Assembly (NCBI GenBank): GCA_964247055.1
Contig: OZ176054.1
Location: 3,782,001-3,846,000, forward strand
Reading direction: 5' to 3'
DNA: 64,000 bases
Origin: Paragordius varius
Taxonomy: Eukaryota; Animalia; Nematomorpha
Both the position numbers and the translations under genes were made by a program. Below are positions 16,860 to 63,962 of this stretch, piece after piece. Under the pieces are notes generated by a model. The model saw only the letters and a list, made by a program, of their open reading frames with translations, had not been told where the DNA came from and searched no databases. Each line of letters begins with the position of its first letter. Positions within the stretch are counted from its first letter, which is position 1.

Positions 16860-16892
<33 letters not shown>
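16860..16892. repeat. (TA)n microsatellite flanking the foldback element; others near 3170-3190 and 15381-15395
   Basis: Uninterrupted TA dinucleotide run. Confidence 0.95.
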
Positions 16893-16895
<3 letters not shown>

Positions 16896-25410: not shown

Positions 25411-25981
25411 ATGTTCAGCGAAGAAACGCTTGAAAAAGTTTTCAATTTTTAAATTTTAGGCTCAAATAGAGGAACGTAAGTGCGACTATTATTTAAAAAT
25501 AAATCAACCGCAAAAAGCCGTCGATTGCCTAAAAAAAGCTATCAGTATTTTTGATTATTATATTTGAGATAATATTAGCTTGACTGTTAAAAGTGTGAAT
25601 AACCAAGAAGTTACTGACATCTTAACTCAAAAATTAAAATATGATAACACCTTTTTAAAAGCTCTTTGTTTAACTTATAGCCTACCAATGCCACTTGATA
25701 CGCAAGAAATAGATCTTATTAAGCAAGAAATTGAGAAATATTTTGAAAAAAATACGGAATTCATAAACAATTTATATAATTCATTTCAATTACGACCTGT
25801 TGATGATTTAAAGTTAGTTAAAATAATATTTAGCATATGTAATGATCTCCATATATTAACAGAACTTAACGATAACTTTGATCACTTAAAAAGTTGTGTA
25901 ACATCACTTTTTAACAAATTAAATCTCACAGAAATAAAAACTACAGATAATTTGAAATTCGATCACAAAAACAATAATTAA
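25411..25981 (+). CDS. NRBF2/Atg38-like MIT-domain protein, 174 aa
   Basis: Exons 25411-25437, 25460-25544 and 25569-25981, with introns of 22 and 24 nt. The N-terminus TLEKAQIEERKCDYYLKINQPQKAVDCLKKAI resembles, from memory, NRBF2 PLNLAHQQSRRADRLLAAGKYEEAISCHKKAA. Confidence 0.6.
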
Positions 25982-26045
25982 TGTGATTTGTCTTTAGACA
26001 AACCCAGATTTAATATTTAAAAAATAAATATGAGCAAAATATTAT

Positions 26046-29000
26046 TTATTGAGAACAATTCGAGTATATTGGCTTCCATTTTTCATTAAATTTAAAAACA
26101 GTGGTTTTCATTACATCAAAATGTAATGTCTGAGGTTTTCTCCATAAATTAGGATTTTCGATATGCATTAATCCACCCAAAACTTCCTATTTAGATAAAT
26201 AAATTTAAAAAAGATAATATTTCTTAAATGAGTAATTTTTTAATAAATGGTAAAAAATATATGAAAAATGATCAAAATAATTTTTTTATTTTTTATTCGT
26301 AAGAGTGAGTCAAAAAACCAAAATGGATATATTTAGGTGTAAATATAACATTAACAAAACCTTAAAAAATGTTGAAATGAGATAATAAATTAAGGAAATT
26401 AGCTGAGATTGGTGCGCCTTGGCGGATTCATTTGTTGGGAACGACAAAATGACAATACTAAATAAAATACTTAGGCGAGTCAAAAAATTTGGACATTTAA
26501 TTAAGGTTATATGTATATAGAATCACTTACAATAAAATGCACATAATCGTAACTTATTTTTAAAAAAAATCTTAATTGTTATGCAAAATGGGGAAATAGA
26601 TATTTTTTAATAAAAACTAAACGGCACACGTCTCTGAATAAAATTTATGTATTTGTGACCTAGAAAAGTAAATGACAAAATATAAATGGTTATTAAAAAT
26701 ATTTTGATTGAATAGCTAAGGGTCAATTATATGATGCCAAATATATTCGTTTACCTAGATAGCGACACTAAAAATTTGAATAATATCTCTGGATTAGTAA
26801 TATAACAAATTACAGAAAGCTGTGAAAACCATAGAAAAAATCAAATTTGACAACAAATAAAAGTGATAAAAAGGTATTTTAATATATTTTATTATTTCTA
26901 CGGGAAAAATATATCTGGGTGGACATCGCGAAATGCGCTAAATATAGCCTGATATTAGCTGTCACACTAGATCAAAAAAAAATTATGGAACAAACAAGAA
27001 CCAAACTCAATTTTAGCTAGGATTATTAAATTACAAGCTCCAAACAAAAATTTTAATCTGTTAAATAAAGAGCATTTGTTAAAAACTTTGTTATAAAGAT
27101 TCAGCATTGTAAAATTTTTTTATTATTGATAAGGACCATAACTATAAACCCCACGAATATCTTGAAAAATAATAAATCAGAACATTCTCATTAGGATGTT
27201 AGGATAATATGCCAGCAGTATCTAGCCAACAAGCGAAATGTAAGGGAAACAAGCAATCCATATTAAATTATTTTACATTTTAGTATCCCTGGAAAAATTA
27301 TATTATTTTTTATATCGAAAATCAACCGCTTTGCTTTATGGCGTTTACTCACCTCATTAAAAAGAAAAAAAACAAAAAAATATAAACTTTTCCAAAATAA
27401 GTTGGAAATGCTTCGGCATTTTCAATAACATGAGCGAATCCTTGACGTACAAAGTCAGTCCCTTCCTTGTTTAGGGCTAAAACACTAAAAGCAAAATACG
27501 GTAATTCTCTGGGTACTACACCGATAGGGAACATACGTGTGCCCATATCAATAATTTTTTTGTTACTTGCCCATTCATATTCACCCGACAAAATGGCGTT
27601 CTATAACATTATAAACACAATAATCATAAATAAAAAAAATTTCCTTTATATATTCCATTTTATATTCATTCCTACCTTAAAATACATTGGTACGTCTGAA
27701 GCTTTATTTAGCGGTATGGGTATAATGGTAATTAGTGCGTGATGAAATTTTTTGGGATCAACGCACGTATATAGCAGTACAGGAGTTTGATTCATACCAA
27801 GGTACATTTGTCCCAACATATTCAGGTAATCCTTGTATATACAGTATGCATTTTAATGGTTGCTTATTTTACACTATAGTAGGGCAATTCACCACAGTAG
27901 TGTTGGAAAAAACAATAAAATGTTAAATAAACAATTATTTCCTTTCTTTTTTCCATAGACTGGGGTGTTGCGAATTGCCCTAGTATAGTGTGAAATAAGC
28001 AACCATTAATATGCAGACTATAATATTACAAAAATCAAAAGATAATTTGTTTTTAAACCGATATTGATGCTAAAAATGGAGGTTAAAAACTTTTTATAGT
28101 TAGCAATTAATTTTGACACTATATATACCTTAAAGTCTTCAAGGACATCTGGTTCCATGTCATGTATGAGAGTAACGTGATTTATACATGTTAGATAACA
28201 TTCGTACGGTACCAAGGGTTGACGATTAGGTAATCCCAAATATATCTAATTTTAAAATTTATAGATAATTTTTGGGTTAAAAAATAAATAATTTTATTAT
28301 TGATTGGTTTGATTTAAAAAAATGGATTTACAGTCAATGCGAAAAAAAATTCTATTTTTTTAATTACATAAAAAATCATGATAAATTGATAACATGGACA
28401 AATCGTTAAAGTCAACAAAATCAAGAATGATTGCGAAATCAAAGGTTCCCGAAACGCTAATATAAAAAAATGCACTTTTGTTCAAAATTATTGAACAGAC
28501 AACCGCGAATTCAATCGTAATTTCCAATAGACAGAATAAATTTTAAAAGAGGTTTGATTATTTTCAATAAAATCCATTGTTTATATAAAGATACATGGAT
28601 ATTAATCGCTCTTCGAAAATCCTAAATCATGGTATTTAGGGCCATTATCACAGGGTATTAATATTTTGTCATAAGTTTCTAAATAGAATAAAGTATATTT
28701 AGTGACCCCCTCCAGATATTGCAAAATACCGTAACACCTCTTAAAACCTAATAAGAAAGATGAGACTAATGGCGTTTAAAAAATCATTAAAAATTATCAT
28801 GGTGTATTATAAAACTGTAAAAACAAACTCCGAATAAATTTAGTTAAAGTGATGTACGTTAACCTCCACAATTCGTAGATATATTTTAATGAAGAGCAAT
28901 CGGTAGAGGCTTCATAAAATAAACAGGAAATGTGTATATAATTGTATAATACCTGGTTTTTATAACTAATAATGCTATGTTTAATCATAGATGGACTATC

Positions 29001-31779
29001 CAAACAATATGGGCAACTAGTGATTGCAGAAACTGCTTGTTTGTAATCTATATAAATTCAATTGTATCATAATTAAAACAGTTCATAATGCATTTAGTGT
29101 AAATTTAGGGAAATATATTGTACCACCAATTTAACTATAAAAAGAACTAAGATCAAGAATCAAAATACATTTTTAGACAATGTAATATTGAGGACAGATT
29201 TTCGCCTTAGTTTAATAAAAAATAAAATTACGGTTATTAAAATTTATCTATTTTCATATTGTATGGCCATGAATTTATAAATTATACAAAGCGTTTAAAA
29301 CTAAACACGCAAATACTGCAAATATGTAAAATTTTCACTTAAAAGAAATAAAAAAAAATAAAAAACGTTGAATAGAATATATTATACTAAGTATCGTGGC
29401 ATCTCTGTTCCTAGAGATGGATTGTTTAATTTCTTGTTTAACGCGTTTGGAGTTGGGATCATTCTGATAATTTTCAGTCGCATTTGGATCCTGTTTATGT
29501 TTCCAGGATTTTTTGTCACTTACGGCACCCTTAGTCACGTATTGACCAGTTAGGATATCAAAATGAGTATCTTCATACTCATTTTGTGTGTTGAAAGATT
29601 GTTCATTACGATTATATGACTTGTTTTTTGGTTGATGATGTGATTGGTTTGAATTTTTATTGGTATTATGTGATTTCGCTAACAATAAAAAATATGTAAA
29701 AGCTTAATTAATGCATCGGTTATTTTAAAATTTGCATAACAATTTGAGCCAAATTTTTAGGCCTATGATATATTTTTCTAAACAAATATAGTAAATGCCA
29801 GTAACTATATAAACATATTAGCCCTATTCTCAAAGTAACTTAAAAGAGAAAATTCCAAAAAATAGACTCTAGGAGAATTAATGTTATTTGTTAGGATTAT
29901 ATAATATAAAAAACTAAAAATTTTGCCACTATTCATATAGACTCGTTTTTGGCTCTTACTAGCAATATCTGAGGATGGACGCTATAAAATTTGACGATAT
30001 CGTATTTGAGCACTGCTTTAAGTAATAATGACTGTTCAGAAAATATATTTGTATCGAAAAAGTTATAAATGATAAAACCAAAATATATAAAATGTTTTCA
30101 CATATCTCCATAATATAAAAAACCATTTTAAAACTTTAAAAAATAGTAATATGAATCCATATTAGATTAAAATATTAAACACATTAAATTGATTTTAATA
30201 TTATATTTGAAAGTTTAAATAATACCAATATTTTTAACATTTAGATGGAAGAACAGCTCTGTTTCTCAAGTATATTAATTTTTTGGTTTATTTCTGAAAT
30301 CTTTAATATATTATTTCAAAAAAATGAACCAAAATGTAGAATAAGAAAATATATAATTGATATATAAACATATTCAATAATAAAAAATACTTAGAGTATA
30401 TATATAACTCAGTAAGTAAAATTCTAAACGATATTCATCGGATTTTGCGAAAATTCTATTTTGTGAAACAAAAACATCCGAATTTTTCTTGTTACCGGTA
30501 CCATACACAATTTTAAACTACTTTTATTTGTGATGTAACCCTAATTACCCAGTGTTATACCATATTTTACTAGGCAACTTACATTTCAAAGTAATATATT
30601 AAAAATTATTACATTTTGAAGGGTGAATTGTCTGTTTTTCAAACACGTGTTGAGCTTTAACAAGTAACTCAGCCCAAGCTTTGTACGTTTTTCTGGTGGA
30701 AGCATTTAATTCAGTTTTCTTATATTCATCAATCTGATCTTCCAAATAATATTTCATATATTCGGCACCGATTCGATTTAAATTGTTTAGAGTTATGGTT
30801 TGTGAATCAACCATCCGATTAAAATAACATAATTCTGGTGTGTCGGTTTCAGAAGCAATTATTGTTTTTTTCGATTCATTAAGGGGTATGAAAGAATCAT
30901 CACCAACAATTGAATTTTCTTTTTCTGGCTCCACTATATGTTGCCTTTCAGACCTGTCTTTATCATATTTTCGATTGTAAGGACGTGGTTGTGGTTGCTT
31001 ATATTTATTATAAGGCTGAGGCTGTTGGGATCGAGGTGGATTTTGAGATGAAAGCAGTCTTTCTTTTTGTTCAGCTTCATCAAGCAATCGTTTATAATTT
31101 TGCATACTCTGTCACAAATAATATAAAATAATTGTTTTAAAATATAGTCATCAATTACTTTGTTTTTGTATAAAGTTCATCAATATTACAAATTTAAAAA
31201 GTTGACACTAATATTTGATGATAAGTTATTTTAATAAATTTTACTTATTTTGCTAATTTTTATCGCATTAAAAAGCCAATTATCACAGCAATATTAAATA
31301 TGGGAAGTTTTCTCAATTTTGGTATGGGCAAATCAATTCATAAAATAATAACATAGCTTACCCCCCATCGTTCGGAGATTAATTGTTGCAATGGTTTACC
31401 TGTTTCTCGAGCTTGTTCTTTGGCTCTTTTAAAGGATTTGCGTAACCAACTCGCACCACCATCTCCAATTGAAATTGGATTAGGTTGTGACGCATTAGAG
31501 TTTTGATTATTTGGATTAAGTTTGCTTATAAAATCTTTATTCAATTCTCTAGAGTCTCGTACATCCTAAAATATATGGTAACTTTATTATATACTTGATA
31601 TGCGTTTGATTGGTTCTGTTTTATTTGGTTTTTAATCACCTTATTATCTATTGTAGAATATTTCGATAGTAAATCGTCAAATAATATTTCTTCCTTATTT
31701 ATAGGTGTAGCGGCCTTTTCGACCCAAACTTCTTCATACTAAAAAATTATTTTTATGATACCTCCTCTGTAGTACTCAT
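26046..31779 (-). CDS. CWF19L2: CWF19-like protein 2 (spliceosome-associated)
   Basis: Motifs: RELN, IGDGGASWLRKSFKRAKEQA..ERWG, CPYCLDS...KHSII, YLGLP, HALITIIPIP..DVPMYFKNAILSGEYEWASNKKIID, VPRELPYF, GFAHVIEN...FP.YFGK|EVLGGLM..NLWRK..KWKP. Exons placed: 31762-31779, 31640-31738, 31362-31565, 30613-31108, ~29388-29678, ~28950-29055, 28129-~28248, 27676-27831, 27388-27600, 26046-26186. Some middle exons are unresolved. Confidence 0.92.
27842..28020. mobile_element. Tc1/mariner-type MITE (179 bp) in a CWF19L2 intron
   Basis: TA|CAGTATGC...GCAGACTA|TA with inverted arms of about 50 bp. Confidence 0.8.
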
Positions 31780-31859
31780 TGGAGTGGGGCTGAATTCGGT
31801 AACTTTCGGTTTTACAGATGTAGTAATTTCAAATACAATTGAATTTTTAGGATAGCAAG

Positions 31860-34800
31860 ATGATAAAGGTCCCACAACCCCTTAATCCATCAATTATTTT
31901 ATTGTCCACTGAAGAAATTGTTAAAAAAGTTCTGAACCGTGAAGTTTTTATATTTGTTATAATAATAGTTATCATGCGTTAATGTTGTTTCAAGTTTTAT
32001 AAAACGAATAAAAGAAGTCAATAGCCTTATTAATGCCATAGCAGAAGAAAACTATGATGATGCTATGAAGAAAGCAGAAGATATTGATATTGAAATCAGT
32101 AGCGTCCAAGGAAATGTTCATAACGCCTATGCTAACAAACCCTTGTTGGGAGTTCCTGTGACAATTAAAGAATGTTTTGCCGTATCAGGGCTAAATCATA
32201 CATGTGGATTATATAGCAGACGAGATTGCAGAAGTTCTAATCATGCTTCAGTCGTTAATCTTTTGCAGGATGCTGGTGCCATTGTAGTAGCTACGAGCGT
32301 TATGCCGGAATTGGGTTAATTCTTTTGTTAAAACATATATATATAACAACTGTTTTATTGGTAATTCTGTTATGGTATTAGATATTTTTTTAATAAATAT
32401 AGTTAAGCGTTCATTTTGATAAAAATTTAATATTGAAAATATTTTAATAAAATTTACTAAGTTTATAACTTTGTCCTTCATTAAACTTTGGCACAAAACC
32501 GGCTACTATTAGCCACAAAATTGAATCTCTACAATAGTGTAATTGCATTAAATTGTTTTAAATGACCAAAAAATTAATATATTAAAACTATTGTTGAGCC
32601 ACGATTTTTTTAAAACAATAAATTATCTAAATGTTTGAAAATATTGGACTAATTCTGTAATCATTTCAATGTGATCATATATAAGGTATGTGGTGGGAAA
32701 CTTACAATGCATTAAAAGGAAGGTGCAAAAATCCATATGATACTAGAATGATTACGGGTGGATCTTCTGGTAATTTTAATGTAAATAATAAAGATTTAAC
32801 AAATCTGTAATTGATGTAAATATTAAATGGATTATTTGGCAAATTATGTTATCAAATGTAAATAACAATATTGTTTTGCCTTTATCTTTTTTAAAACTCC
32901 ACAATAATTTACCTTTTTCTCGATTTTATGTTTGAAATATGATTTATATATCCCCATATCTAGTTATTTACAAAAGGGATTTTTTAAATTCGCAAAATAA
33001 TGAAACTCTTTTGATTTTAGACACGACGTTTATAATTGAAAATCTTTTAAATCTTATAAATCAATATAATGTCTTATTTTCACATTAAGTACTTTTTCCT
33101 TATTACATATATATAATTGATTATAAATGGTTACTTTAACAAGGCGGTGAAGGAGCTTTAATCGCTTCGGGGTGTTGCCCTATTGGGTTGGGCTCTGATG
33201 TTGGAGGCAGTATTCGGATGCCAGCTTTTTTCAATGGAATTTTCGGACACAAAGCAACTGGAGGTAGCTAGCATTTGAATTTTATTTCAAAATCTTATCG
33301 TATTTGATAAAACATTTTTAATATATTTATGAAAGATTCATAATATGAAACCGAATTTGCAATCATATCGATTCTTTTGGTAAAAATTGGGACCGCAAAA
33401 CTTAACAAAAAAGTTTTTAATTAAGAAATAACCCTATACCTATTCAGATTCGAAAAAAAGTTATTTATATGTTTAATCTTTTGTAAATAATATTGCTATA
33501 ATATTTTACCTATTATCTCTTATTCATGTAACATAAATATAGCTAAAATTGCATATATTTTTATTTTAATGACTATTTTTATGGAGACCAAGGTAATGAA
33601 TAACTAACCATTTAATGCTATGTAGTTAATTGATTTTAAAACATTTCTATTATTTTAAAATGCCAAAGCGATTTTCTGTGGGCACGAATATATTTTGTGG
33701 TAATCTTTTGTTATATTTCGTTATGCATATAAATAATGTAAAAAGTTTTTAAATGAATATATTTTGATATTTATAGGTATCATATCGAATGAAGGGCATT
33801 ACCCAGCAACTCGCGGTGAATTAGATAAATATCTAGTTTGTGGTCCTTTAACAAGAAGTGCTTCTGATCTCAAATTGCTTGTCAATATTTTAGCCAAACC
33901 ATCTCCTCATTATGAGCGCCTTAATTTAAATGAAACTGTAATTTTCATATTTTCATATTAATCAAATTTACTCTAATAATATTTAGGTCGATTTGAAACA
34001 ATGCAAATTTTATTCATTTTGTGATAATTTTATGAGACCATGGGTTTCACCCATACATCCTCAATTAAATGCCGTTCAAGAAAAAGTAATTGAATTATAA
34101 TTATAAATGATTAATATACAATTTTTGCACTCTTTGAATAAGTTTTATATCCCAATTCCAAATCAAATTCTATATTCAGGTTGTTGCTCATATCGAAAAA
34201 CGATATAATACCAATGTTGAAAGAATTCATCTTAAGGATCTACCTGAACTTGACAAGGTTTATATGGTTAATTTATCGATAAATAATATTAGAAAAAAAA
34301 TCTTTAAAATGTTTAATATTTAATTTTTTAAAGGCATTTCATTTATGGGTCGCAGCCTTGGAACGCAGTAATGGACCCTGGTTTTCCGAAATTATTTTGG
34401 GTAAAGATGAAATTGAAGGGTTATCTAAAGCCAACCTTATAACTGAAATTGTTAAAAGTATGATACGTAGAAAGGATGCTCACAGTCTTCCATGTAAGTA
34501 AAAGTTTGTTTTTTATTATAGCATTCAAAGAATTTTTAAGTCGTTTTTATATGATCTTAAAATATTACATTGGTTTGAATAAACAATAAAATAGAAAACT
34601 CTATAAATGTCGTGACGATCATGGTAAAAATGTTATAATTTTGTTTAACCATTGAATTAGGTTTTATCTTGATAAGTTTTTGTCCTTGATTATCATATAT
34701 AATTGGTCCGCATGTTTGGATCGTTATAAACTACGAATTTAATACAGATATGATACTTTTTATCATAAAGATATTTATTGAAATATAATAGGTTAACGAT

Positions 34801-35303
34801 ATATAATTTTTAAATTCTAACACCATATATGGTATATTTGTGTTTAAGGCCTATCATTCTTGGCTCAAGAAGCATTTATCAAACGTTTCATACCAAAAAG
34901 CTTACTTCAAAAAACGATTGGTGAATTACAACACCTTAAACAACGTTTCTCCCAACTCCTCGGGACCGATGGGGTACTTTTGTTCCCTAGTAATCCAAGG
35001 TTTGCCTACAAACATAAACGGCCCTTTTTACGCCCGCTTAATTTTGTGTACACAGCCATATTTAATGTGCTGGAGTTCCCTGTAACTCAATGTCCTTTAG
35101 GTCTTGCATCTACGCTTCAAATTTCAACAACAAACAATGAAAAATTATCCAAATCAACCAATAATATTACACCTTTTGTAAAGTATAACCATATGCCTTT
35201 GGGTATACAACTCATATCCAACATGTACAATGATCGATATTGTTTAGCCCTTGCAAGTGAATTAGAAGATGCTTTTGGAGGCTGGGTTCCCCCATGGACT
35301 TGA
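31860..35303 (+). CDS. Fatty-acid amide hydrolase 2-like amidase, about 528 aa
   Basis: Exons 31860-31943, 31969-32314, 32686-32769, 33144-33263, 33777-33937, 33987-34085, 34180-34257, 34334-34493, 34849-35303, all phase-compatible. Amidase signature [46 protein letters not shown]-terminus PLGIQL...[20 protein letters not shown]. Confidence 0.93.
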
Positions 35304-44400: not shown

Positions 44401-47400
44401 TTGTAGGTTAACATAAGTCCATGTGGATACATTAATAAACCAAATTATATGGATAACAATATATCTTTAAAAACAATGTTGGAATCGGGACATTGTTCAG
44501 GTATATCTCACAAATTTCAAACATGGCCAAAAGAATCAATTTTTGATTTTGACAGCGCAACGAACGAGTATAGAAATATAATATAAAATAAATTGTTTAA
44601 TATCGGGAATAAGGAATAGAAAATTAAATTATCATAATTTCTCAACATTTTATGTTATATAAAGACTTAGCGATGATTACTAAAAAGTCTACTCAAACAG
44701 CATGTTTTAATATGTTCAATCTAATTTATATATGACGAAAAATATTTTTAATTAAACACCTTTTCGGTTTCTTATGTAGATACGCATTTCAAACAACATT
44801 CCAACTCATGAATGCACAAACTTTATATAACTTTTGGAGACTGTCTTTGCGGAAATTCAAAAATCCTAACAATAAAGGTCAGCATAGTCAACATACTCCT
44901 GTCTGGACACCAGATGCTGCCGAAATGGTTTTGAAAAAGTGGCAAAACGAGTTCCAAAAGCATTTCGCATCTTTTGACTCTAAACACAATCTAAAAAATA
45001 CGGCATTTTATGTTTCATATCCTGATCTGACCCAAGAGGCACATGGCAAATCTCTGTTATACCTGACAAAATTTTATAACCATAAAGTGGCAATTTTGAT
45101 CCTGTTTTCACTAGTAAGTTATTTTATTCCGATTGATGTGGACAAACAAAATTGGTTGTCTTAATATTAATTTTAAACGTTTTTAAGAGGACACTCGTAA
45201 TTTTTATTACTAAAAATCTATTGTAAATGAATGAAAAACTAAAATAATAAATTTTAGTTGAAGTCAAGTTTTAATTATAAATGTAAATTGTATTAATAAC
45301 TTGCACACGTAAAAATATAAATTTAATAAAAAATAAAATCATTCGGATCTGAAAGGATTCTTTATCAATTATATATTTAAAAATTATAAAAACTAAATTT
45401 ATTGATGAAGTTTTGGATCCATATTTTATTTTTTTAATAAATTTTTTATTTATATATACGAGTTATTATTTTTTATTTAAATTTTGAAATGTCCAATTTA
45501 TGTGTAAATAAATTTAACATGGATAGTTATTTATTCGAAGCTATTTTATTTTCTAACTGAAAATTTGTGGTCATGGTGTCTGTGAATATTTTAATTGACG
45601 ATATATATTTATTTCATTAAATGCTAGATACTGCTGGTGTTTATTTACAATGTTTGGAACATATATGAATGGAACCTAAAGAATTTATTTAATGAAACAT
45701 TGTCTTTAAGTGCAATCCTAACTTTATTGCCTATTGGAATAAATTTTTTGACTTTATTCGCATTTTATGGATATACCCTGATACTTCGGTTCACTACAAA
45801 TACACTAAGTGATTTAACCTACATCATACCATTTATGCTTTTCCATTTAAACCTATTGGGGTTACTACATACATTTTATCGCACCCTATTTGAGGTTCGA
45901 ATCATGAAAAATTTACCGATAACATCGGATAGCAATAGTGTCGCTTCATCGTTTCCACCAAATATTTCGGTAATATATACAATATTTATTATCTTATAAA
46001 TTAATACAAAATTCAGGAATGAAATAAAGAAAATTGTATTATATACATTCGGCCTAGGTCTTTTTCCATAGTTGGATGGAACATTTTGCGGTTTTAATCC
46101 TACCATTGCTTGGCGTGATGTGCTCTTTCGGTATGTTAGCATTTATTCCTGTCAAAGTGTTACGGGACATATCTTTACAGGTAAATAAGTTATTTTTGAC
46201 GGATCTTTAATTTGATTACGATTTTTATGTTTTATAAGATGTTGTTTTAAGCCTTTTTAGCCAACATTATTTATTAAAAATACTATATGGATAAAAGGGA
46301 CAGATTAGATCAGCCCCTATTGTTACTTAATTACGTTTAAATAAAGCTTTGTGTTAGATTGTTACATCTAGTAAGTCAAAAAAATAATTAGCGATCTTCT
46401 TTTGCCTCTTAAGTGGCATACTCTCCCAAAACTAAGCTAAAATATGTAATACAAATATTTAAATTTTATAATACTTAATAAATTAAAATAGGTTTATTTA
46501 TTGGAATAACTCTTTTTTATATTATTATTAGATTGTTTTACATCTTGTTATAAGCCAAATATCCCTGTTCATCCTCTTTCCCACTCTCATCAGATTTCTA
46601 TTCAACTTTAATTGGTTTATAAACCTAATTCCTTCAATATCAAAAAACGAAATTCGGCAAACTAATACACTCTACCAAAATATTACGCAAACTTCTTTTA
46701 ATCAAAACTTATCAGAAGATGCAAACGATCAAAATAAACAAATTTTCCCTGATAATCAATGCAAAAACCAATTTTTAACTTTAAAGTCAACACCTCTTTT
46801 ATCAAGGCATAATAGACGTTCAAAGATATACATGTTTTATTTTGATCTCTACTTCATACCCGAATACAAAATTATACCATATCCTAGCAACAGAACAGAT
46901 GAAAATCGAATAACCCAACATAATTATAATAAAAATGTGTATATTTCAAGACCAATAACAAAATATTGTATAATTATTTTAATGGTTATAATTATTTTTT
47001 CTATTCTTTTGACCAATCAAAATGGCTTCAACAAAAAATGGAAAGATTTTTTTGATTTTATAGCCTTTTGGAAGCATGTCTATTTTAACATTGACACCAT
47101 GTTTGCCTGGGCTTCAACTCCGGTTTATCAAAAAAGATTGACTCATTTTGACACGAATTCGGCAAAAATGGTTTGGTCTCATGACCAAAACTTTATCAGT
47201 GAAAATCCATTGAAACTAAATAATTATTTTAGTGTTCGACTGCAACAATCTATATATATTGTGTTGCAGTATCTTCATACAAATATAAGGGCATCACCTA
47301 ATAAAGAAACGAAGCCAATCGCATATGAGGACATGTGCACAGCTTATAAGTTTTGGTTGTGCGAAATGCGGTAATTATTATTTATTAACATTCGGAATTC

Positions 47401-50400
47401 ATTGTTGTAAAATAATTATTTAAATAATCATTTTCATAAAAAATATTTATTGCTTTATAATGTCCTTCATATATACTGATTGGTTTGATTTAGTTATTGG
47501 CTGATAAATTTACAAAGCAGCTTTATAGCCGATTTTGAAAAGGGGTCCATTTATGTTACCAAGTCAAGGAATGATATTTCATTAGCATGGACTTACGACG
47601 CAAGTCGAGATGGAATTTTGGCAGGAATGTTAATGGAAACAATTTACAAGAAATGTCAAATATATCAAAGTTATCTCTCCCCAAACGATGGTTCTTTGTT
47701 CTTTAAGGTAAAATTATCTCTAAATTTAAAAAATGCAAAGAGCTTTACGCATTAAAAATATTAAATAATTGTATGTAATGCGTACAAATAATTGTAAAAT
47801 TATTCGAAGTGTCTACGGTTTAATTAAATCTTAATTTCACAATGCATGCATAAAATTAAATAGAGTTAAAGTGCAATATTAGTTATCACCAAATCACTCC
47901 TTCATTGAATCGAACATTTAAAAACCTCCTAAAAATTTAAGTTTAGTAATTAACCCATAAAAAAATTGGCTTAATTTTATATGGCTCTTTTAATTTTGTT
48001 TAGAAAAAATGAAATGAGTATTTGTAATAGAGTACACATGACAAATGTGTTCCAATTGTTTCGTTCAATTGATAAATTAATCAAAATATATAAAATACCA
48101 GGCTATAAATTAATCGTTTACCAATAAATATATTTTTTCAAAAAAAACGTTAAAATCTGTTAAATTGCCTATCTAAACCTTATAAGTAAAATTTTTACAA
48201 AGATCAATAACTCAGGTCAATATTACTAATACTTTTAATGTTAGATATTAAATAAAACGACACCCTCTTCTATTACCGATATAAAACTGGTGGATGATTC
48301 AATGCAATACATAAATCCTTTAGGATTCGATTATTTTTTAACCACTTGGATTAATAGCGAAAAACAAAAATCTGTTCATGATATCAACAATGAGCTCTAT
48401 TTTAACAACCATGCCTCAATCCCCTCTTGGAAATTTGACATTTATGATCTAAGTTTTCAAAGTAAATTTTTATCAACGTTTCTGAGACGCTTAAAACGGG
48501 TGTCCAACACAAATTTGCGGGCCGTATTTTTGCATCCAAAAATCTGGGCGGGCCGCATTCAAAAAATATATGGGCATCTACAAATATTTTGTTAGATATT
48601 AAACATACTGTAAAACTACCATTTTAACATTTTTTGCTAGTTCATTGCCAAAAATTCAAAAATTTGTTGCCAAAAAAAATCAATTGATTTCGTAGAATTT
48701 TGTATTTTTCCGGCGGGCTGCAAAAATCTTTGGGGGGTGGTTTAAGAAATTTATTAATTATAATATATGAACATTCCTTTCATTTTAATAAGGACAACCA
48801 TATTTTTAAACCATGAATTTTTAATATAACCCATTCAATAATAAAGTTGTGAATTGGTAACACACTCAAATTCAAATTAGACATTATTGGTATTCATATA
48901 GTTTAGATAAAAAAGGTTAAAAATTATGCTGTTCCGTTTAAAAAAATACTTTAACGTGTTGTCTTGATAATTTTTATTGTTATTGCAAATTTTTACCATC
49001 ATGTTTATAATTTAGTACCGAAATCGGAAAAACTTTTGAGCTGGTCCATGCCATTACAACTTAATCATTACAATATTAAAACTATGGCGGGTAAAGAACG
49101 GATTGAAAATTTGATACGTGACATATTACCAATACATGCCATAGAAATTAATGAATCTCATTTCGTGTTCCCTTATGAAATATTTATCATGAATCAAAAT
49201 TTTGACCAGTATAAATGTTACAGCACCTTTTGGAATTGGATTTTGTTAATTGTGTCAATGCAACTTATTTTTTGGGGTCTGATAACTACTTTTAATATCA
49301 CAAATCAAAAGTGCTACCAATTCAAAACCTTTTTAATTATCACTGGAGCAACTAGCTTATTGATACTATTGTACGGCGTGATCAATAATTTTGGCAAACG
49401 GTCCTCTATAAACTATTACAATTTTTTAACAACTATGCTGGTGTTACTCGTTTGTGTTGGAAAACTGGTATACATAATATCGGTAAAGTTTACTTCTAAT
49501 TATTTAGGTTATTAACACTATTCCAGGAACAAACTTCAAATTAAAATTTCTAGCCAGTGTTGATATTTTACTGATTCCTTCACTTTTTGAAATCTGCTCA
49601 ATTTTAATTATTTCTATCTATTTGAGATACTCACCCATTCCCTTTTTACAAAAGTATGAATTTTTGTGTTATTTCAAAATAAGATTATACGTTAAATCAG
49701 GAGTATCCAGCACATATAAAGTGGGCCGGATCTGAAAAATATATGGGCCAAAAATATTTCTTTAGATTCCACACACCAGGCTGTAATATAATTTAAAAAA
49801 ATATAACTATCTATTTTACCAATTTTTGCTATCATTGTGTTAATTAGAAAAACTTATTCAAAAAATTAGTTTTACAAATATCAATTTTACTAAAATTTCT
49901 TCAGCATATTTTCGCAAATTGCGGATATCGTATTCATTTGGTATTTTCCAAATTTTTCGCGGGCCCATAATATCTCGGAGAAGGGACGAATGGTCACCCC
50001 TGACTTAAATTATAATTCTTTGTTTATATATTTTTTAGCATGGTTTCTCCACTTTATATTACCTGTATTTTTTCATTCCTAATGATTGGATTATTCCCAT
50101 ATATTTGTAAAACCTTGTTTAATATATCTGACGAAAATGCCTCCAGTGACCTAAAATATTCAAATTCATTAAATTTGGGCGAAAACCAAAACACACAAAC
50201 TCGGTTAAATAATAATGAACAAAGTAAAGAAACATCGCAAAACTTACTTGAAATAAAAATGAATGTGCTGAGAAAACCTTACTGCGAAAATCAGAGTTTA
50301 AGCAATAAATGCATAATCTTGACTGATGCAAAGGAAATCCTAAATAATAATGAAAATCAAATAATCAACTCACAATTAAGTCGTTTCCCTTTGATATCGA

Positions 50401-50606
50401 ATGAAATGTTCACTAACAAAATTATAATCAACAATAATTTTTATGCAATGCCTAACAACAACTCTCAAAAATACTACTCATCGAATATAAAATTGACGAC
50501 ACACCAAAACCACGTTGGTAAAAAGCGTAATAAACAAAATGTTCCATACCATATATCATATAATTCCTTATCAACTATTTCAGGTTTTTACACTGATCAT
50601 TTTTAA
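38409..50606 (+). CDS. ptc: Divergent Patched (PTCH-type RND/sterol-sensing protein), about 1405 aa
   Basis: 15 phase-compatible exons: 38409-38574, 38644-39001, 42845-42911, 43609-43703, 44203-44323, 44407-44567, 44780-45113, 45628-45969, 46058-46180, 46532-47370, 47494-47707, 48245-48461, 49016-49482, 49508-49653, 50039-50606. Patched-type motifs: WTYKDLCHK, IPC.IPTPLDCF.QG, AFQTTFQLM, WTPDAAEMVLKKWQ, IPVKVLRDISLQ, SRDGILA, LVD..INP.GF..FLTTWINS. Confidence 0.88.
39065..39536 (+). mobile_element. piggyBac-like MITE, 5'-truncated, in Patched intron 2
   Basis: ggggatcccaggcctg...caatttgaatcaaatg|ttaa. Colinear with 19472-20051. Confidence 0.7.
39822..41259. mobile_element. Non-autonomous hAT (Ac-type TAGGG termini) with GACCTAGGTC subterminal palindromes
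   Basis: TAGGGTTGTG / CACAACCCTA TIRs and a perfect 8-bp TSD CCCCAGAC (39814-39821 and 41260-41267). Confidence 0.9.
40463..41100 (+). mobile_element. Second copy of the CCATTTGCA foldback MITE
   Basis: Colinear with 5007-5648 over its whole length, with different numbers of 21-bp units. Confidence 0.85.
42942..43539 (-). mobile_element. Non-autonomous Helitron in Patched intron 3
   Basis: On the minus strand A|TCTATA...CTAG|T. Reverse-complement copy of 7271-7837. Confidence 0.88.
48497..48735 (+). mobile_element. Degraded Buster-type hAT MITE in a Patched intron
   Basis: cgggtgtccaacac...gcgggccg left end. The right TIR was not recognised. Confidence 0.5.
49698..50002 (+). mobile_element. 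Buster-type hAT MITE in the last Patched intron
   Basis: CAGGAGTATCCA...TGGTCACCCCTG with nnnTAnnn TSD cgttaaat/acttaaat. Confidence 0.8.
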
Positions 50607-52150: not shown

Positions 52151-52399
52151 TATGTAATAGGCATATTGCTTTAGTATTTTTTAAATAAGATGTTGCACTT
52201 AAAGCCCAATTAATTTGTCCCTTGAATAAAAGAGTTACACTAAATTTCAAAAATTACCTTATATTTTCGTGAATTTTTTTAATGTGCATGTATATATTAA
52301 AATTAATCCATAACTTATATAACTCGCCCGCTGTTACGCAATTAAAATATTGAATCGCTTTACAACATTATATTAATAGGCGTAACAAAAAATGTCAAA

Positions 52400-55300: not shown

Positions 55301-57560
55301 TCTCTCAACTCCTTACATTGAATAGCTTTTAAACAATGTATTTTGCTGGCCCACCGACATTCAGCCACGTGAAATTCTTCATTCGTTTGATTAGCTAAAG
55401 AGGTCACATACCTAAACAACAATTATCAATATAATAGCGAAAGAATAAAGTGAAGCTAATAAATTGTGATGTATATTTATATTGGGATAGAAAATACATG
55501 GCTCAATATCTGCATCATTACGCTTTTTAAGAATAAAATCAATTAAATATATTTTTTCTAATAATACAGAAGATTCACCCTTCACCAATGTCTCACAACA
55601 CAATATTATGCATAAATTTAGTGCCAATATGATGATAAAAAACAAGGATATCGCTTAATGTGATAATTGATAATATCATATTTATATATGTTGTATCACC
55701 AATTATTTAATATTATAGGGGTTGACCCGCATTATATTTTGGTGAGTACTACTGCTTTAGGCGATTAAAGGAACTTATTTGGAGAAAATGCATGATATTG
55801 ATATGTTAATTGATGAGTGCTATTACTTTAAAAAGGCTTATTACGAAAAACAGCCAGTAAGGGAGAGGGGTTTATTATATATATTTTAATTAATGACATA
55901 TGCCAATTTTCTTTATAAATGTAGCAAAAAAATGTTTTTTTAAAAAATAATTGTTTAATACAACCAAAATGTTAAAAATTACTCTTCATAATCCGTTGGT
56001 GTAAAGGCGTTAATAGTTTCATTTGAGGTTGCCAATGCATTATCCATAATGTTTTTATGTCTATAATAATTTGTATTAACAGAGGTCTAAATATTCTAAT
56101 AATAACACCATGCTTTTATTTTAACATTCCATTCCCTTTTGGGGTAGTTTTATATCCCGAAGCGATTTGAAATATGAATATCTTAAAAATACTTAAAATA
56201 TTGGGCCGAATTTCCCTATATGCTTTTTTAGCTTCTTGGGCGCATTATACAAATATTTTTTAAAAAAATGTAAAACCGTAAAAAATCATCACCTCAAACT
56301 TTTTTCCCCATCTTTTTTTCTATTTTATAATCGCAATTGTAACAGGTAAATAACTGAATAATTATTTAAAAAGCGTCAAGGCTACATTTTACCAGCAAAA
56401 ACTTGTGATTTTTTTTTCGTTTCAATCGTGTAATGGAACTGTCCCAATTTTAGACTCTAGAAGGCAAAAACTAGAAAAAATATAAGCTTCTTTATTTAAT
56501 ACATGGAGACAATGTTTGATAATCAAATTTTAACTAAAACAACTTAAAAACTTTAGTTTATATACGAAATTGAGCTCTGGGATATAAAACAACCCCAAAG
56601 AATAAACTAGGACAAAAAAGTAAAAAGGTATTTACATAAGACACTTCATTTTATTATGGAAATATATTATAGACATATCATATATACATTGGATAATATA
56701 AAATTTTTAACCGTACTATATTATATATATTTCACATATTAAAAGTTAATAACATTGTAGGTTAAAAATCATTACTTTGATTTCAAAAAGTTCATTTCAA
56801 CATCCCGATCTGTCAAAAGTTGTGTTAAGGCCAAATGATGATCATTCTCAATCCGCAATAAAGTGTCCAAATGCGGAGTTTCTATTAGGTAGGAAAATGC
56901 TTCCGCAAATATGACCTCATCGTCCTTAATAGGGTTATGGTACTTTTCCTTTAAGAAAAAACAGCATAAGTGAGTTAATTTAAAAAAATTTACAAATTAT
57001 CAACGACACTGAGAAATATAGAGACCAAAGTATTTTTATATATATGTGAAATAAGTTTGTTATGTTTTAAGTTTGAACAACTCTTGTATGTTAGTTTTAA
57101 ACCATATATGCCCAAAATCACCCTATTCACGTAAATCTCAACTTTTGACTAATGATCAGTTTGCTATCCTAATAATTTCTATATTTTATTTAAAAAAAGG
57201 AAGAATAAAGATTGAATATAAACTCATATAAAGTTTAACCAAAACTTTGATAGAGCCATCGTCCCAAGAATTTACCAATTCGTCAATGTTTTGACCATAT
57301 ATATCTATGCTTTTAAAGCTTATTTGCGATATTTTTATTGTTTCATCCAATATAAATTTTTGCAATTTATTTGATAAATCTATGGTCAAAATTTAATTAC
57401 TTTTTATGTGCTTTAAAGGAATAAAATACTTTCTTATGATATCATTAACTATATCGGAAAACTGATCAACGATTGGTAATATAATGGGATGTTTTAAGGA
57501 ACAAGTATTATTTTGAAACAAATACTCGTATTCAAAGACACATTTCGCGTTTAGGTTCAT
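52400..57560 (-). CDS. C12orf4: C12orf4/FERRY3 homolog
   Basis: Motifs: [106 protein letters not shown]. Exon 1 is 57401-57560, followed by a 21-nt intron. Internal and last exon boundaries are partly approximate. Confidence 0.92.
56141..56620 (+). mobile_element. 'GGGTAG' family element in a C12orf4 intron
   Basis: GGGGTAGTTTTATATCCC...GGGATATAAAACAACCCC followed by the tail aaagaataaactaggacaaaaa. Confidence 0.75.
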
Positions 57561-57591
57561 CTTTTTTAATCATTTTCTTGTACGGCCACTC

Positions 57592-60077
57592 ATGGTATAT
57601 ATTTTTTATAAAAATTGTAGCCTCAAAACGAATATGTTGAACGTTTTAGAAAAAGACACGGGCGAAGATTAGATTATGAAGAGAGGAAAAGAAAAAAGGA
57701 GGCAAGAGTTGGCCATGAAAAAGCTTTAAAGGCCAAAAAACTTAGAGGTTTGAAAGCTAAATTTTACAATCAAAAAATGCATGCTGAAAAAATTGCTTTG
57801 CAAAAAACTATTAAATCACATCAAATGAAGAACAAAAAAACACAATCGACACCGACTATAAGTAATAAAGGAGCACTTCCCTCATATCTTTTGGATCGTC
57901 AAGATGTGGAACAAAACTCGTCAAAAATTTTGTCAAATATGATAAAACAAAAACGAAAGGAGAAGGCTGTAAGTTATATTCAAAATTATACATATTGGAT
58001 TTTTGTTTTCAAAAGTTGGTCATAAATATTTGCCTCAATTTCAGAAAATTTGGCCCTTTTTTATTTAATTTTTATATATTTTTCTAGGTTTTTTTCGAAT
58101 CATTTTTGTGGATTATAGCTAGCATAGGAATTATATATTAATACAAATGGCACACACATGGCTAAATGCACTATATTTATTAAATAAATATTTGGAATAT
58201 TAGAAATGACACATAATTATATATTTTTTATATATAGGGTAAATGGGATGTCCATCTCCCTAAAGTTAAGGGTGTATCTGAAAAAGAAGTCTTTAAAGTC
58301 ATAAGGACCGGAAAATCGAAAAGTATCACTTTTATGATATGTTCCTTTTGAAATAAATTAATTAAATTATAATTGAAGATTGAATGTTTATAATTAAATT
58401 TTTATAAAGACATTCTAAAATATGCTTTATTAAAGGATTAATATTTAAACAGAATCGAACAACTGGCCTTCTAATATTGAGTAAACTTTATCGAAGCATT
58501 TTAGATCTCTTTGTTTACGAATTTTGTTAAATATATGTAAATTAGTTTTATTTGGAAAATAGAGAATACATAATTAAAACTTTTAAAGTCCATGCTGAGA
58601 CATGAATACTTTATGCTAATTTTATCATAATGCTCTAAATCCTTTTTATTTAAAATTCGGCTCCAAAAATTCAAATATTTTTATTCAAAAATAAATTTTT
58701 ATATACGACCATAAAATATAGAAAAAGCTTGGAAAAGAATGGTGACAAAAGTGTGTTTTGTGGGAGAAAATTTTACCCGAAAACCACCCAAATTTGAACG
58801 ATTTATACGCCCAATGGTATTTTTAAACTCATTAAATTAATTAAAATTTTATAATAATAAAGCTTTTATCATAATTATTCCCTAATTTTTAGGAAAATAT
58901 TTTCAATGACCCTATTTACAAAAAATCGATTCCATATTTTAATTATACTTTATTTTTTTCTTTATCGAAAAAGGTTTCACCAATATAACCGAAAATTAAA
59001 AAATTTATCAAATTAGCTAACTTATTTTTTAAACATCATATATACGCGTTTTTTTCCATCAAATATAACTATAATTTTAAAATACATGGATTCTTTACTT
59101 TTCTCAATTTTTATTCAGTTTTTTATGATTTATATCGTTTAACTTTATTCTAAAAATATATTTTAAATTTAAGATATGATTAAACTTTATTTTTTTCAAG
59201 ATTATGGCTTCAAAAATCACAATACTTTAAACCATTGTACCTTGAAAATTAGAAAATTGATGATCAGCATGAGCTCATTAGTTTATAGGCGCTTGTTATT
59301 TTATTAAGCTCCTTATGAAGAGGGAGGGTTCCACTCCACTTATATTTATAAAATTATCTATCTAATAGGGTTTACGGTTCAATAAAGCAAATGTAACTCA
59401 TCCCGAATTGCGTACGACTTTTCAATTACCCATTATGGGTGTTAAAAAGAATCCTACATCACCACTCTATACCTCTTTGGGTGTCATAACCAAAGGCACC
59501 ATATTAGAGGTTAATGTTAGTGAATTGGGCCTCGTTACACAAGGGGGGAAAGTTGTGTGGGGTTAGTTTTTAAATATATATACAAATATATAAAGTTTTT
59601 GAATTAGCACGATATTAACTAATTAGTAACTTTTAAAACGATTTAGAAATATTAAATTAAACGTTGCAAATGCCTTTTTATTTTTTGTTTCAAAGTCAAT
59701 TTTTATAAAATGCTTTTATAAATTTGTATTCTTTGTTAAAGAAAAGCTAATTCCACTTGTTGAAGGAAAAATGGTTGTATGATGTTAGTTTTTAATTAAA
59801 TTTATTAATTGTGATTTTGTTTTTAATAGCACGAGTGATATAGACTGGTTTATTTGTAAAATTCTTAATTGTAATATTTTACAAAAGTTTTTAATTAAAA
59901 AAATTAAAGCAAATTAACACGCATGATTTATGTCAATACTGTAAATAAAATTTACGCCAAATATATCATTCATCAATATATTATATTTTTATATACGTGT
60001 ATATATTAGGTAAATATGCACAAGTCACCAATGTACCAGAAAACGATGGTTGCATAAATGCAGTTCTTTTAGTGTAA
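57592..60077 (+). CDS. NSA2: Ribosome biogenesis protein NSA2, 263 aa
   Basis: Exons 57592-57594, 57621-57968, 58238-58322, 58722-58816, 59369-59561, 60010-60077. Motifs: [63 protein letters not shown]. Confidence 0.97.
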
Positions 60078-60487
60078 TAATGATATAAATAAAATAAATA
60101 ATATTTTATATAATTTTTCCTGTCAATGTTGAAACTATGACATTTTTAACGTCCATTTGTATGAAAGTTTCTCTGCCTCCATTTGTCCAAACATCTTTGA
60201 TGTATTTACGTATTATATCGGTCCAAATTGTTTTGCATTTCTTAATTATATATATATATATAATATGAAAAAAAAGTATATAATCAAAATTTGAATATGT
60301 ATCAATTAAATATCGAGTTTATGGGTAAAAGTCGCCCTATAACAGTTATTGCTTTTTTGAAGTAAATTCAAATTGTTAGCCATAAATTAAATAGTAACTG
60401 TTTGTTCAATTTAATACTCTAAGAAGCGAAAACGAAATATGATTTTTAGCTACAAAAAATATATATATAAAATATTGATTAGGGTAC

Positions 60488-63385
60488 CTCCATTTTGTAG
60501 TGAACGGTTTTCTCATCACGGTCTACCAAATGAAATGTAAAACTTTCTAAATATTTAAATATGTATTATTAACCATTTATTGCCTTTAAGTTTCTATGGA
60601 TAAAAAATAAAATTGTCTTGATTGGTAAAAAGCTAGAAAACAATTTATATTATGATTGAAAAATAAATTTTATTAATTATAAATGTATTTTATTGTACAA
60701 TTTTTGTTATATTTTTTCTAATATTATAAAAAATTTAATATATAAAATGAAATGTTTGATAAGTTATAGACATTAATTATTGCAAACACTATTTTAATTT
60801 TTACCATTAAGAGTGTTATGGTAAAGTTTTTTGTGTATTAATGTCCATGGTACGTGGAAAATTATGCGAATCGTCAAATCGATAATGAATGCGAGGCTTA
60901 AGATAACTAAACGCATCTATATACAAAAAAATTTAATATTACTCTCTAAAATATATGTTTATAAAAATATAGGAAATAAAATTAACTTAAAAATCTAAAT
61001 TTCACCAAGGTTATAAAACATTTACTGAGTAATTTACAAGTTTTTAGGCCTGACATAAAAAATTAATAATAAAAATAATTCTTATTGGTCAAAAAAATGC
61101 AACGTTTAAATAAGGCGAATAGATAAATCCATTATAATGTTCACTTAAGTTAAAAAAAATCCAATGCCTCATATCTAGGGTTGGGGTTAACCCGTCAAAA
61201 AAATAAGCCCGCTAATAAATGCATTCATTGGGTCATACCCAATATATATTGCTTCCAAATAAACTTTTTACAACAAATCAAACTTAGTATAAATTGTTTC
61301 AATAAAGTTAAAATCAAATATAATCATTAGAATTTTTTCGCTTATTCTTTCATTAAAGCAGTCACATTCATGCTAACCCAACTTTACTTAGATCCCACAA
61401 ATTAAATTATGTATCAACATATCTCGGGTTTATTTATAATACTTATTGTAAAATACTTCGATAAATTATTTTATTTCACTATAAATATAAATTATTTGTA
61501 ATTTACCCAAGTGAACATAATGTAAAAGACTAGTATAGATGGTAGTATGAAAAGGAGAACACTAAAGAAAAACGTTCCAATAAATAATTGGTCCATTTCA
61601 TAATTGGCATGGTCGACCCTTTTCCTAAGTGGATTCCATTTACAGCCCCGGAATAAACGGAATAGAGATCGTAAGGCAGTGAATACTAAACCATATAATC
61701 TAATTTACATGGTGGTTATCTTATAGCATAACTATAAACCTTAACATAATTCAATTATATTTTGGCTCTCATCTAATAAATCAATCTTAATTAATTTCTA
61801 ATTTCACGATTCAGACCCAGAAATGTAAAAGGACATTATCTTATAAAAATGGTTAATATAATCTGTTGTGAACACATTGGTTAAAATGGTTAACATCAAT
61901 TATAGTCTAATACAAAAGGTTCCAAAAGTGGCTTAGGATTTTTCTACCCGCGAAAAATATGGAAAAAAAACAAATAAATACTATTAAATTGAAAAAATAT
62001 CTTAGTATAATTTTGTATCATCTACTTTAAAATATTATTTTGTAATAATATTTTTTAGTATTATATCCCTTTTGTTAATTAACGCCATTAATTGCCGTGT
62101 AAAGTCGTTTAATATTTGTATATACCACATATTACCATTAAATTAAATTTCGGGTACTGTGACTTGACTTCTTCAAGGTAAAAATTATAATTTATACAAA
62201 TTTTTTATATACGATAACCGTAATATTCAAATTAATTAATAAACTAAAATATTTTAAAATGTCGGCAAATCTGAATATGTTTTTTTCAAATTTGCCAACG
62301 GAATAAACAAAAATGAAAATAAATAGCAGATGTATCGTGGTTGTAATTGTTACGTTTGAAATATATTAAATATTTGTTGTCAATGCTATATTTTTTCAAC
62401 GCGGCCCGCAGATTTTTTCAGCTGAAAATACGGCCCCTAAAGTCAATTGGATACCGTTGTCTTATAGCATTAACAAAAATTTAAAGATTCTAACTATTTC
62501 TATAAATATATGTATACAGTCATGTATCTCTTATTTTATCAAAAAAATATTTTTTTTTGTTAAATGGGTATACATATTTGGTAAAGAATGGAAAAACCAA
62601 GAGCTCTATGGTTATTCTTATACTTTTTTGATGAATATGATCCATTGTTAATGCCATAGATATTTTTTCCATCCTAAATATTTATACCCATTTAACGAAA
62701 AAAAATAAATTTTTGATAAAATAAAGGATACATGACTATATATTATAGCAAATTGTTTATTAACGGATTAAAAAAATGTGCATATATTATTGGTTAAAAA
62801 TTAATAAAAAAAATACTTGGAGGCATATACATAAATGCAGTAAATATGAAATGTGAGTAATGATATGGTATCGACCAATATGGCCAAAAAGTAGGTAAAA
62901 CCAAACCATAAGGAATACTTTGCAATCATAAACAAGTAGATCAGCGCAAAGCCAGATAATTTGACATATTCTATATGTATAATTAATAAATTATATAAAC
63001 AATTTTTTAGCAAAAATTAATAAAATTTTAAAATTTACCTGACCATAGTTTAACGTGAAAAAGATAAAAATATCCAAGAGATGATGTCAGAGGCCGTACT
63101 AATTTAAGACCAGAGGGAATACCCATTAACCAATTTATATTGTTTTTCAATCGAGATGATACCACCTTAACGTTAAAAATAATTTACCTCCATTAGATTC
63201 AATACCATAAGGCCATACTTATCATAATCAAAAAATTTGGCGAGTAAAAAATAAAATAGTAGGCCAAGAAAGGCGTTAAAAATTATAAATGCCACATGAG
63301 CTTTAATATCATAAAAAGTTTGGACTAAATGATATCTAAAAAAAGAATTAATTATTTTATTTTTTTTGTCCATGTGTTTATACAT
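60488..63385 (-). CDS. PIGQ: GPI-GlcNAc transferase subunit Q (Gpi1); last exon unresolved (probably about 60300-60430)
   Basis: Exons 63188-63385, 63039-63165, 62817-62970, 61507-61699, 60805-60916, 60488-60546. Motifs: WLMGIPSGLKL, DTISLLTFHIYCIYVYA, SLFRLFRGCKWNPLRKRVD..YEMDQLFIGTFFFSVLLFILPS. Confidence 0.9.
62517..62738. mobile_element. Tc1-type MITE in a PIG-Q intron
   Basis: TA|CAGTCATG...CATGACTA|TA with inverted arms of about 55 bp. Confidence 0.8.
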
Positions 63386-63432
63386 TTTTTATCATCTGAT
63401 TTACTTATTTTGAGTATATATTTACATCCGTC

Positions 63433-63962
63433 ATGGTATTTTTAATTTTTATTTTGTAGAAAGTAAAAGCACGCGCCTTACGGGGAAAGAAAAAGGCAGA
63501 ATTATTAAAACTTTTAGATGATTTGAAGCAAGAATTATCTGAATTACGTGTCGCCAAGGTCACGGGTGGAGCACCGACCAAATTATCTAAAATGTAAATA
63601 TTTTATATGCATGTATTACCCTTAAATAATTTTTATTATTTAAGTTTAGACCATGCTAAACTATTGGCAATCAAAACCATTGTTTTTTTGATTAATGAAA
63701 AATTCACTGATTGTATCGCAATATTTATAGACATACCACCAGAAAATCAATTGCTCGTGTTTATACTATAATTAATCAAACACAAAAGGAAAACCTGCGA
63801 AAGTTTAATGCTAAATCCAAACGGTTACCATTGGATTTGCGTAAGAAGAAGACCCGTGCTATGAGGAGACAACTTACAAAACATGAAGCCAACATTAAAT
63901 CCAGGAAACAGCTTCGAAGGGAGAGATTATACCCTAGACGTGTTTATGCACTTAAGGCCTAA
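63433..63962 (+). CDS. RPL35: 60S ribosomal protein L35 (uL29), 122 aa
   Basis: Exons 63433-63435, 63460-63593, 63731-63962. Motifs: [48 protein letters not shown]. Confidence 0.97.

Follow-up and report, generated by a model that had tools for sequence, protein, structure and literature searches.

Probable introns of 21-29 nt close to start codons in the genome of the hairworm Paragordius varius

Among animals, introns shorter than 30 nt have been published only for myxobolids and for Dicyema japonicum, with medians of 22-27 nt, and a 2026 survey of 51 animal genomes, the text of which makes no mention of hairworms, reports no other animal with introns below this length (PMC13644364). The microintrons of the flatworms Opisthorchis, Gyrodactylus and Echinococcus are start-proximal, dominate intron positions 1 and 2, are clustered and coexist with introns of thousands of bases (PMC6530080, PMC4040987). 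Tiny introns are also described from ciliates and nucleomorphs, with ~25 nt in Paramecium and 15-16 nt in Stentor (PMC5014332, cited in PMC13644364). Two hairworm genome papers make no mention of introns, and a literature search combining hairworms and introns found nothing relevant. Here we describe ten short segments in a 64,000-nt stretch of the genome of the hairworm Paragordius varius (assembly GCA_964247055.1, contig OZ176054.1, positions 3,782,001-3,846,000, forward strand). This whole stretch is referred to as the window, and coordinates are counted from its first letter. With a probability of about 0.8, we read the segments as genuine GT-AG introns, probably of the U2 type, that at 21-29 nt are near the lower size limit and occur only as the first or second intron, no further than ~200 nt from the start, later introns being ordinary (49 to ~1,100 nt). 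The basis is junction homology in two genes, gene identity in four more, one orthologous intron position, and the presence of three segments in DNA reads.

The length range in the window is otherwise published for animals only in myxobolids and Dicyema, and the position pattern is known from flatworms. The segments share with the introns of myxobolids and D. japonicum the GT-AG ends, a length below 30 nt, a donor motif reduced to GTA and perhaps also A-rich positions before the AG at a roughly fixed distance from the donor, and in each case the host is a parasite with an AT-rich genome. In myxobolids and Dicyema, however, most introns are tiny, whereas here only the start-proximal ones are, and the same genes hold introns of 49 to ~1,100 nt. 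As in the flatworms, the short class occupies positions 1 and 2 near the gene start and is clustered within genes. The flatworm modes are ~32-37 nt (and 58-90 nt) compared with 21-29 nt here, the hairworms belong to an unrelated phylum within the Ecdysozoa, and splicing in the window is predicted from DNA sequence. The ciliate and nucleomorph introns are of similar length, and those with a length that is a multiple of three carry in-frame stops, so that retention ends translation early. All three segments with a length divisible by 3 likewise contain a stop in their own phase, a pattern that is not significant with three cases in AT-rich sequence. Unlike the hairworm, these are unicellular lineages with uniformly tiny introns.

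The tiny introns of NSA2 and RPL35 are, on sequence evidence, compelling. In NSA2 a 26-nt GT..AG segment (57595-57620, + strand) abuts the ATG at 57592-57594, which is thereby fused to the donor GT. The exon that begins at 57621 aligns from residue 2 (PQNEY) of the human, fission-yeast and budding-yeast NSA2 proteins, and the acceptor TAG is the in-frame codon immediately upstream of it. (All homology searches were run exon by exon, and spliced joins were translated only for frame checks.) RPL35 has the same arrangement. A 24-nt GT..AG segment (63436-63459, + strand) abuts the ATG at 63433-63435, an in-frame TAG directly precedes the exon that begins at 63460, the ATG-GT lies 24 nt upstream, and the exon aligns from residue 2-3 of RPL35 from many species. 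Both genes are single-copy in the genome and, as far as the assembly shows, the two segments must therefore be removed for the conserved proteins to be made. A search of the genome found no processed copy of either gene that might act as a cDNA fossil. A gene finder based on codon usage recovered the tiny introns of both genes and skipped short exons, and it was not used for the gene models.

Downstream, the introns of these genes are of ordinary size. Four introns of NSA2 span 57969-60009 on the + strand (57969-58237, 269 nt; 58323-58721, 399 nt; 58817-59368, 552 nt; 59562-60009, 448 nt), with the exons placed by NSA2 motifs and the junctions from sequence. The second intron of RPL35 (63594-63730, + strand) is 137 nt long and in phase 2.

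The RPL35 gene could be compared with that of a related species. The best match of RPL35 exon 3 is to the horsehair worm Gordionus sp. m RMFG-2023, at 79% identity, and the other listed matches are at 60-73%. The comparison with dicyemids made in the initial annotation is kept as an analogy and not as a statement of lineage. In Gordionus, the genome of which has a published GC content of 26.9% (genome paper of Gordionus sp. m RMFG-2023), the RPL35 start codon is followed by a 44-nt GT..AG intron at the same codon and then by GGT AAA GTT. The second intron is ~169 nt there, at the same phase-2 site, and 137 nt here. Both RPL35 intron positions are thus common to the two species, and the 44-nt length of the first suggests that introns which were short to begin with shrank further.

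Two observations concern the ordinary introns of these genes. The core of RPL35 intron 2 (63650-63720; L001 10255-10325) is conserved with Gordionus, including an identical 20-base run and a common TTCACTGAT. The intron may host a small RNA there, for instance a C/D small nucleolar RNA (snoRNA), and no Rfam family matched the core at E <=1. In NSA2 intron 3, the segment 58419-58502 has a weak match to the C/D-box family snoZ182 (E 0.77; 23 bits where the gathering score is 80), which is probably due to chance.

Five further cases, in PIGQ, an amidase gene, FERRY3/C12orf4 and CWF19L2 (two introns), are well supported by gene identity and reading frame; the gene models in the window other than those of NSA2 and RPL35 are approximate. 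In PIGQ (Gpi1) the candidate first intron (63166-63187, - strand) is 22 nt long and lies 186 nt after the ATG at 63373, and its retention would shift the frame. Exon 2 (63052-63165) matches positions 71-106 of the Gpi1 profile and later exons match positions 94-164 and 162-227. With the 22 nt removed, the 62-codon exon 1 that runs from the ATG at 63373 would fill the N-terminal length of the profile that is otherwise absent. In FERRY3 the candidate first intron (57380-57400, - strand) is a 21-nt GT..AG segment 160 nt after the ATG at 57560. It contains stops in all three frames and is flanked by open frames of 56 and 63 codons, and the exons downstream match the Pfam family Fy-3. FERRY3 is not present in the Protein Data Bank (PDB).

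In the amidase gene a 25-nt GT..AG candidate (31944-31968, + strand) follows the ATG at 31860 by 84 nt. The match of exon 2 to the Amidase profile starts at position 2 of the profile. The exon begins where solved amidases stand at residue 20-27, and it has no start codon of its own. The start is supplied by exon 1, which has 28 codons from the ATG at 31860 and a coding-like codon usage. No paralogues of the amidase exon with which to test the junction were found. The introns of this gene are, in order, 25 nt, ~365-500 nt and 49 nt long. The last of these (33938-33986, + strand), the shortest of the ordinary class, is the sole GT..AG pair that joins both amidase open frames without a stop.

In CWF19L2 the ATG at 31779 precedes the candidate first intron (31739-31761, - strand; 23 nt, GT..AG) by 18 nt. 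Exon 2 contains no methionine, and its frame ends upstream at the acceptor TAG, so the six-codon exon with an ATG located 23 nt upstream is the simplest start. This exon is too short for a homology check. Exon 3 carries the conserved GDGG..W..K motif and matches residues 218-260 of human CWF19L2, and CwfJ_C domains follow downstream. A 29-nt segment (31566-31594, - strand) that was absent from the initial annotation joins exons 2 and 3 without a stop and is the probable second intron. Two alternatives that also keep the frame open were rejected, one of 17 nt, judged too short, and one of 74 nt, which removes part of exon 2.

Six of the genes described above form three head-to-head pairs, FERRY3/NSA2, PIGQ/RPL35 and CWF19L2/amidase, with start codons at 57560/57592, 63373/63433 and 31779/31860 and with 31, 57 and 80 nt between them. 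All six have a tiny first intron. These distances imply that the 5' untranslated regions are very short or overlapping.

The nine segments of 21-26 nt proposed in the initial annotation were all confirmed in the sequence, with their coordinates, strands and lengths, and the 29-nt segment in CWF19L2 brings the set to ten. Lengths are mostly 22-25 nt. Each of the ten has a 5' GT and a 3' AG on the coding strand; eight begin with GTA and eight finish with TAG. Their GC content is 12-24%, compared with 37% in the exons of NSA2 and RPL35, and the larger introns of these two genes have a GC content of 20-23%. The window as a whole has a GC content of 22-31% throughout and contains split animal genes. 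Positions -3 to -6 of the tiny introns are T-rich. An A is present at position 15 or 16 from the donor in 10 of 10 (background 0.57, p ~0.003) and at position -9 in 8 of 10, both patterns having been noticed post hoc in a small AT-rich sample. The branch site may be the A located 15-16 nt from the donor, which would fit a fixed donor distance as proposed for myxozoans. We infer that the segments are removed from RNA.

The tiny introns are placed very differently from the ordinary ones. Counted along the mRNA from the A of the ATG, the distances of nine of the ten are 3, 3, 18, 27, 84, 112, 160, 162 and 186 nt, that is, no more than 190 nt from the start codon, which bears out the statement in the initial annotation that they mostly occupy the first or second intron position. 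CWF19L2 and a further gene, here called gene A, each have two consecutive tiny introns. The later introns that could be placed exactly are 49-552 nt long, and the largest, one each in PIGQ and FERRY3, are ~1.1 kb. A range of 49 to 3843 nt had been given previously for these other introns. Its lower end corresponds to 33938-33986, and no intron of 3,843 nt was located. Genome-wide, ~18 neighbouring exon matches within kinase domains are 37-834 nt apart and none are less than 30 nt apart, a count in which tiny introns divisible by 3 could be hidden within matches read through stops. Very short and ordinary introns occur in the same genes (26 nt and then 269-552 nt in NSA2, 24 nt and then 137 nt in RPL35, and likewise in the amidase gene), so one splicing machinery must handle both size classes, as had been proposed.

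The three remaining segments are weak cases by sequence. Gene A (25411-25981, ~175 residues) contains two candidates on the + strand, one of 22 nt (25438-25459), for which the GT..AG ends and the frame logic are the only arguments, and one of 24 nt (25545-25568), which has GT..AG ends and an in-frame TGA in phase 1. The codon usage of its exons looks coding, and a weak TPR-like match in exon 2 (E 0.003) falls below the family cut-off. No relatives of gene A were found in the Atlas or in a word-based protein search, which reaches only proteins of 0.55-1.75 times the query length, so that single exons miss full-length orthologues. The third candidate (49483-49507, + strand) is a 25-nt GT..AG segment between open frames of 176 and 75 codons in gene D, a large multi-exon gene at ~44736-50603 with a codon usage indistinguishable from that of chance open frames. 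Gene D has no Pfam match even at E 10 and no PDB match. A comparison with 1.84 billion cluster representatives gave no relative of the exon that adjoins the candidate, the largest exon had no relatives in the word search, and neither paralogues of the gene D exon nor relatives in the Atlas were found. The label 'Patched' given to this gene in the initial annotation is supported by no search, whether of Pfam, PDB or sequences. Gene D looks like a lineage-specific membrane protein, or is not one gene. Its candidate intron is the least supported of the ten and the only one away from a known start codon, located >3 kb into the gene or, should the exon mark the beginning of a separate gene, at ~400 nt. 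The claim that the introns are needed to keep conserved reading frames therefore holds by homology for NSA2 and RPL35 and is supported for PIGQ, amidase, CWF19L2 and FERRY3, but it does not extend to the candidates of genes A and D, which have no relatives. A further 22-nt candidate at 29959-29980 was rejected, its flanks not being coding-like.

DNA reads cover part of the locus. Three DNA runs (X1, X5 and X4) from two studies cover the whole of 57300-63299, and contigs built from them span three of the segments free of gaps, 57595-57620 in X1 and X4, 63166-63187 in X1 and 57380-57400 in X4, with no joint there among the joints shown. Run X4 comes from the other study and carries another organism label. 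Divergence between the X4 contigs and the window reaches ~5%, and the run may represent a closely related or cryptic species or merely a discrepancy in labelling. At the two sites that X4 spans, the intron lengths are identical to those in the window. The three segments are unchanged in DNA contigs and thus, at those three sites, are not assembly errors, a possibility that had been raised at the outset.

Several points weigh against taking all ten segments as start-proximal introns. A scan for GT..AG segments of 18-32 nt that join two otherwise closed open frames of at least 30 codons found 64 in the window where 43 were expected. Such bridging segments are common by chance, and frame logic alone is therefore no proof of an intron; with an enrichment of only 1.5-fold, the scan was dropped as a significance test. 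For three of the nine segments first proposed, those in genes without relatives, frame logic is the sole support, and the gene D intron, if real, may break the rule of position near gene starts. Exons 1 and 2 of FERRY3 and exon 1 of PIGQ have no profile match and, like gene D, a codon usage indistinguishable from that of chance open frames. The runs found with the locus are all DNA, and X6, which we guessed to be RNA, holds nothing at 57300-63299. The orthologous intron position was compared for RPL35 only. The frequency of bridging segments, the lack of relatives of genes A and D and the chance-like codon usage all favour a reading in which some or all of the segments are gene-model artefacts, that is, chance GT..AG pairs at places where the real transcripts use other starts or longer introns. 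This is impossible for NSA2 and RPL35, given that homology begins at residue 2-3, that the ATG abuts the donor, that the genes are single-copy and that Gordionus has a counterpart, and PIGQ, amidase and CWF19L2 require an upstream start for which the nearest spliceable ATG is the proposed one. We regard such artefacts as very improbable overall; they are excluded as the full explanation, and as a partial one they may account for up to three or four of the ten. For NSA2 and RPL35, the AG could instead be a trans-splice acceptor with the AUG supplied by a spliced leader, as in some flatworms. In favour of this, both coding exons begin at the acceptor and lack an ATG of their own, and the head-to-head neighbours leave only 31 and 57 nt between start codons. 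Yet an ATG fused to GT precedes the coding exon by 24-26 nt in each gene, and by 44 nt in Gordionus. By chance, an ATGGT at such a distance is expected about once per 80 genes. We consider trans-splicing extremely improbable. To our knowledge no spliced leader has been described in the hairworm phylum, and no search for one was made. We give practically no credence to the idea that the segments are assembly or sequencing artefacts in the form of small false insertions, which would lack GT..AG ends and an intron-like GC content; three DNA runs from two studies, including a form that is 3-5% diverged, carry the three sites.

A further alternative takes the segments as introns and differs in their history. 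The initial annotation had proposed a lineage with miniaturised introns throughout, as in dicyemids, that was later re-expanded by transposons, the tiny introns being the survivors. In its favour, the genome is rich in repeats. When the window was compared with 200 kb from other chromosomes (0.18% of the genome), a comparison that detects only families of at least several hundred copies, 22% of it matched this small sample. High-copy interspersed repeats lie in four of the larger introns, in CWF19L2 (27835-28034), gene D (48563-48737), FERRY3 (56115-56630) and PIGQ (62513-62743). The genome size of 110.6 Mb (44 contigs), compared with the ~280 Mb set in the assembly check of the Gordionus genome paper, also fits. 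However, survivors are expected to be scattered along genes, and nine of the ten segments are close to the ATG. The four later NSA2 introns have no repeat matches in the 200-kb sample, small as it is. Only some of the later introns hold repeats; the initial annotation had described many of the large ones as containing transposons. Even in the two ~1.1-kb introns the repeats make up only ~20-45% of the length. Also against the model are the RPL35 site of Gordionus, where the intron of 44 nt is not tiny, and the absence of exon gaps below 30 nt within kinase domains. Miniaturisation followed by re-expansion thus appears improbable. The pattern is positional rather than that of random survivors, and it fits compaction near gene starts.

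Compaction of this kind probably took the following course. Introns near gene starts, already short, would have shrunk until they reached the lower limit that the spliceosome imposes. At ~24 nt an intron would offer almost no neutral target for insertions and would remain tiny, and the downstream introns would be free to vary in length and to acquire repeats. One candidate reason for the bias toward gene starts is that the cap-binding complex assists recognition of the first donor. A bolder proposal, which we advance tentatively and consider rather unlikely, is that hairworms splice in a position-dependent manner. In such a system recognition of introns of 21-29 nt with a fixed donor-branch spacing of ~15-16 nt would be limited to the first ~200 nt or so of the transcript, possibly aided by the cap-binding complex, and the same spliceosome would remove the ordinary introns downstream. 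If true, animal introns below 30 nt would have arisen independently for a third time, and for the first time with tiny and ordinary classes set apart by their position within single genes.

A bilaterian whose essential genes combine introns of 21-29 nt with others of 50-1,100 nt would be a natural experiment, from which one could learn what limits the shortness of introns and how a single spliceosome deals with both sizes. Annotation is affected as well. Gene predictors with the usual minimum intron length will truncate or mis-start many genes in such genomes, and these mis-predictions can inflate the apparent gene loss in the little-studied hairworm phylum.

Two of the repeats lie within the ~1.1-kb introns. 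The foldback repeat at 62513-62743 (no strand assigned) in PIGQ has four matches in the 200-kb sample. In two DNA runs its word depth is ~1,000-fold that of the flanking sequence, with many opposite-strand joints. This very high-copy repeat resembles a miniature inverted-repeat element. The interspersed repeat at 56115-56630 (no strand assigned) in FERRY3 has five matches in the sample. Elsewhere in the window, a long tandem array at 15400-16930 has open frames that repeat a 7-residue unit on both strands, which implies a minisatellite with a repeat unit of ~21 nt. At 1106-2644 on the - strand, an intronless open frame of 513 codons with a galactosyltransferase domain stands among neighbours that are heavily split.

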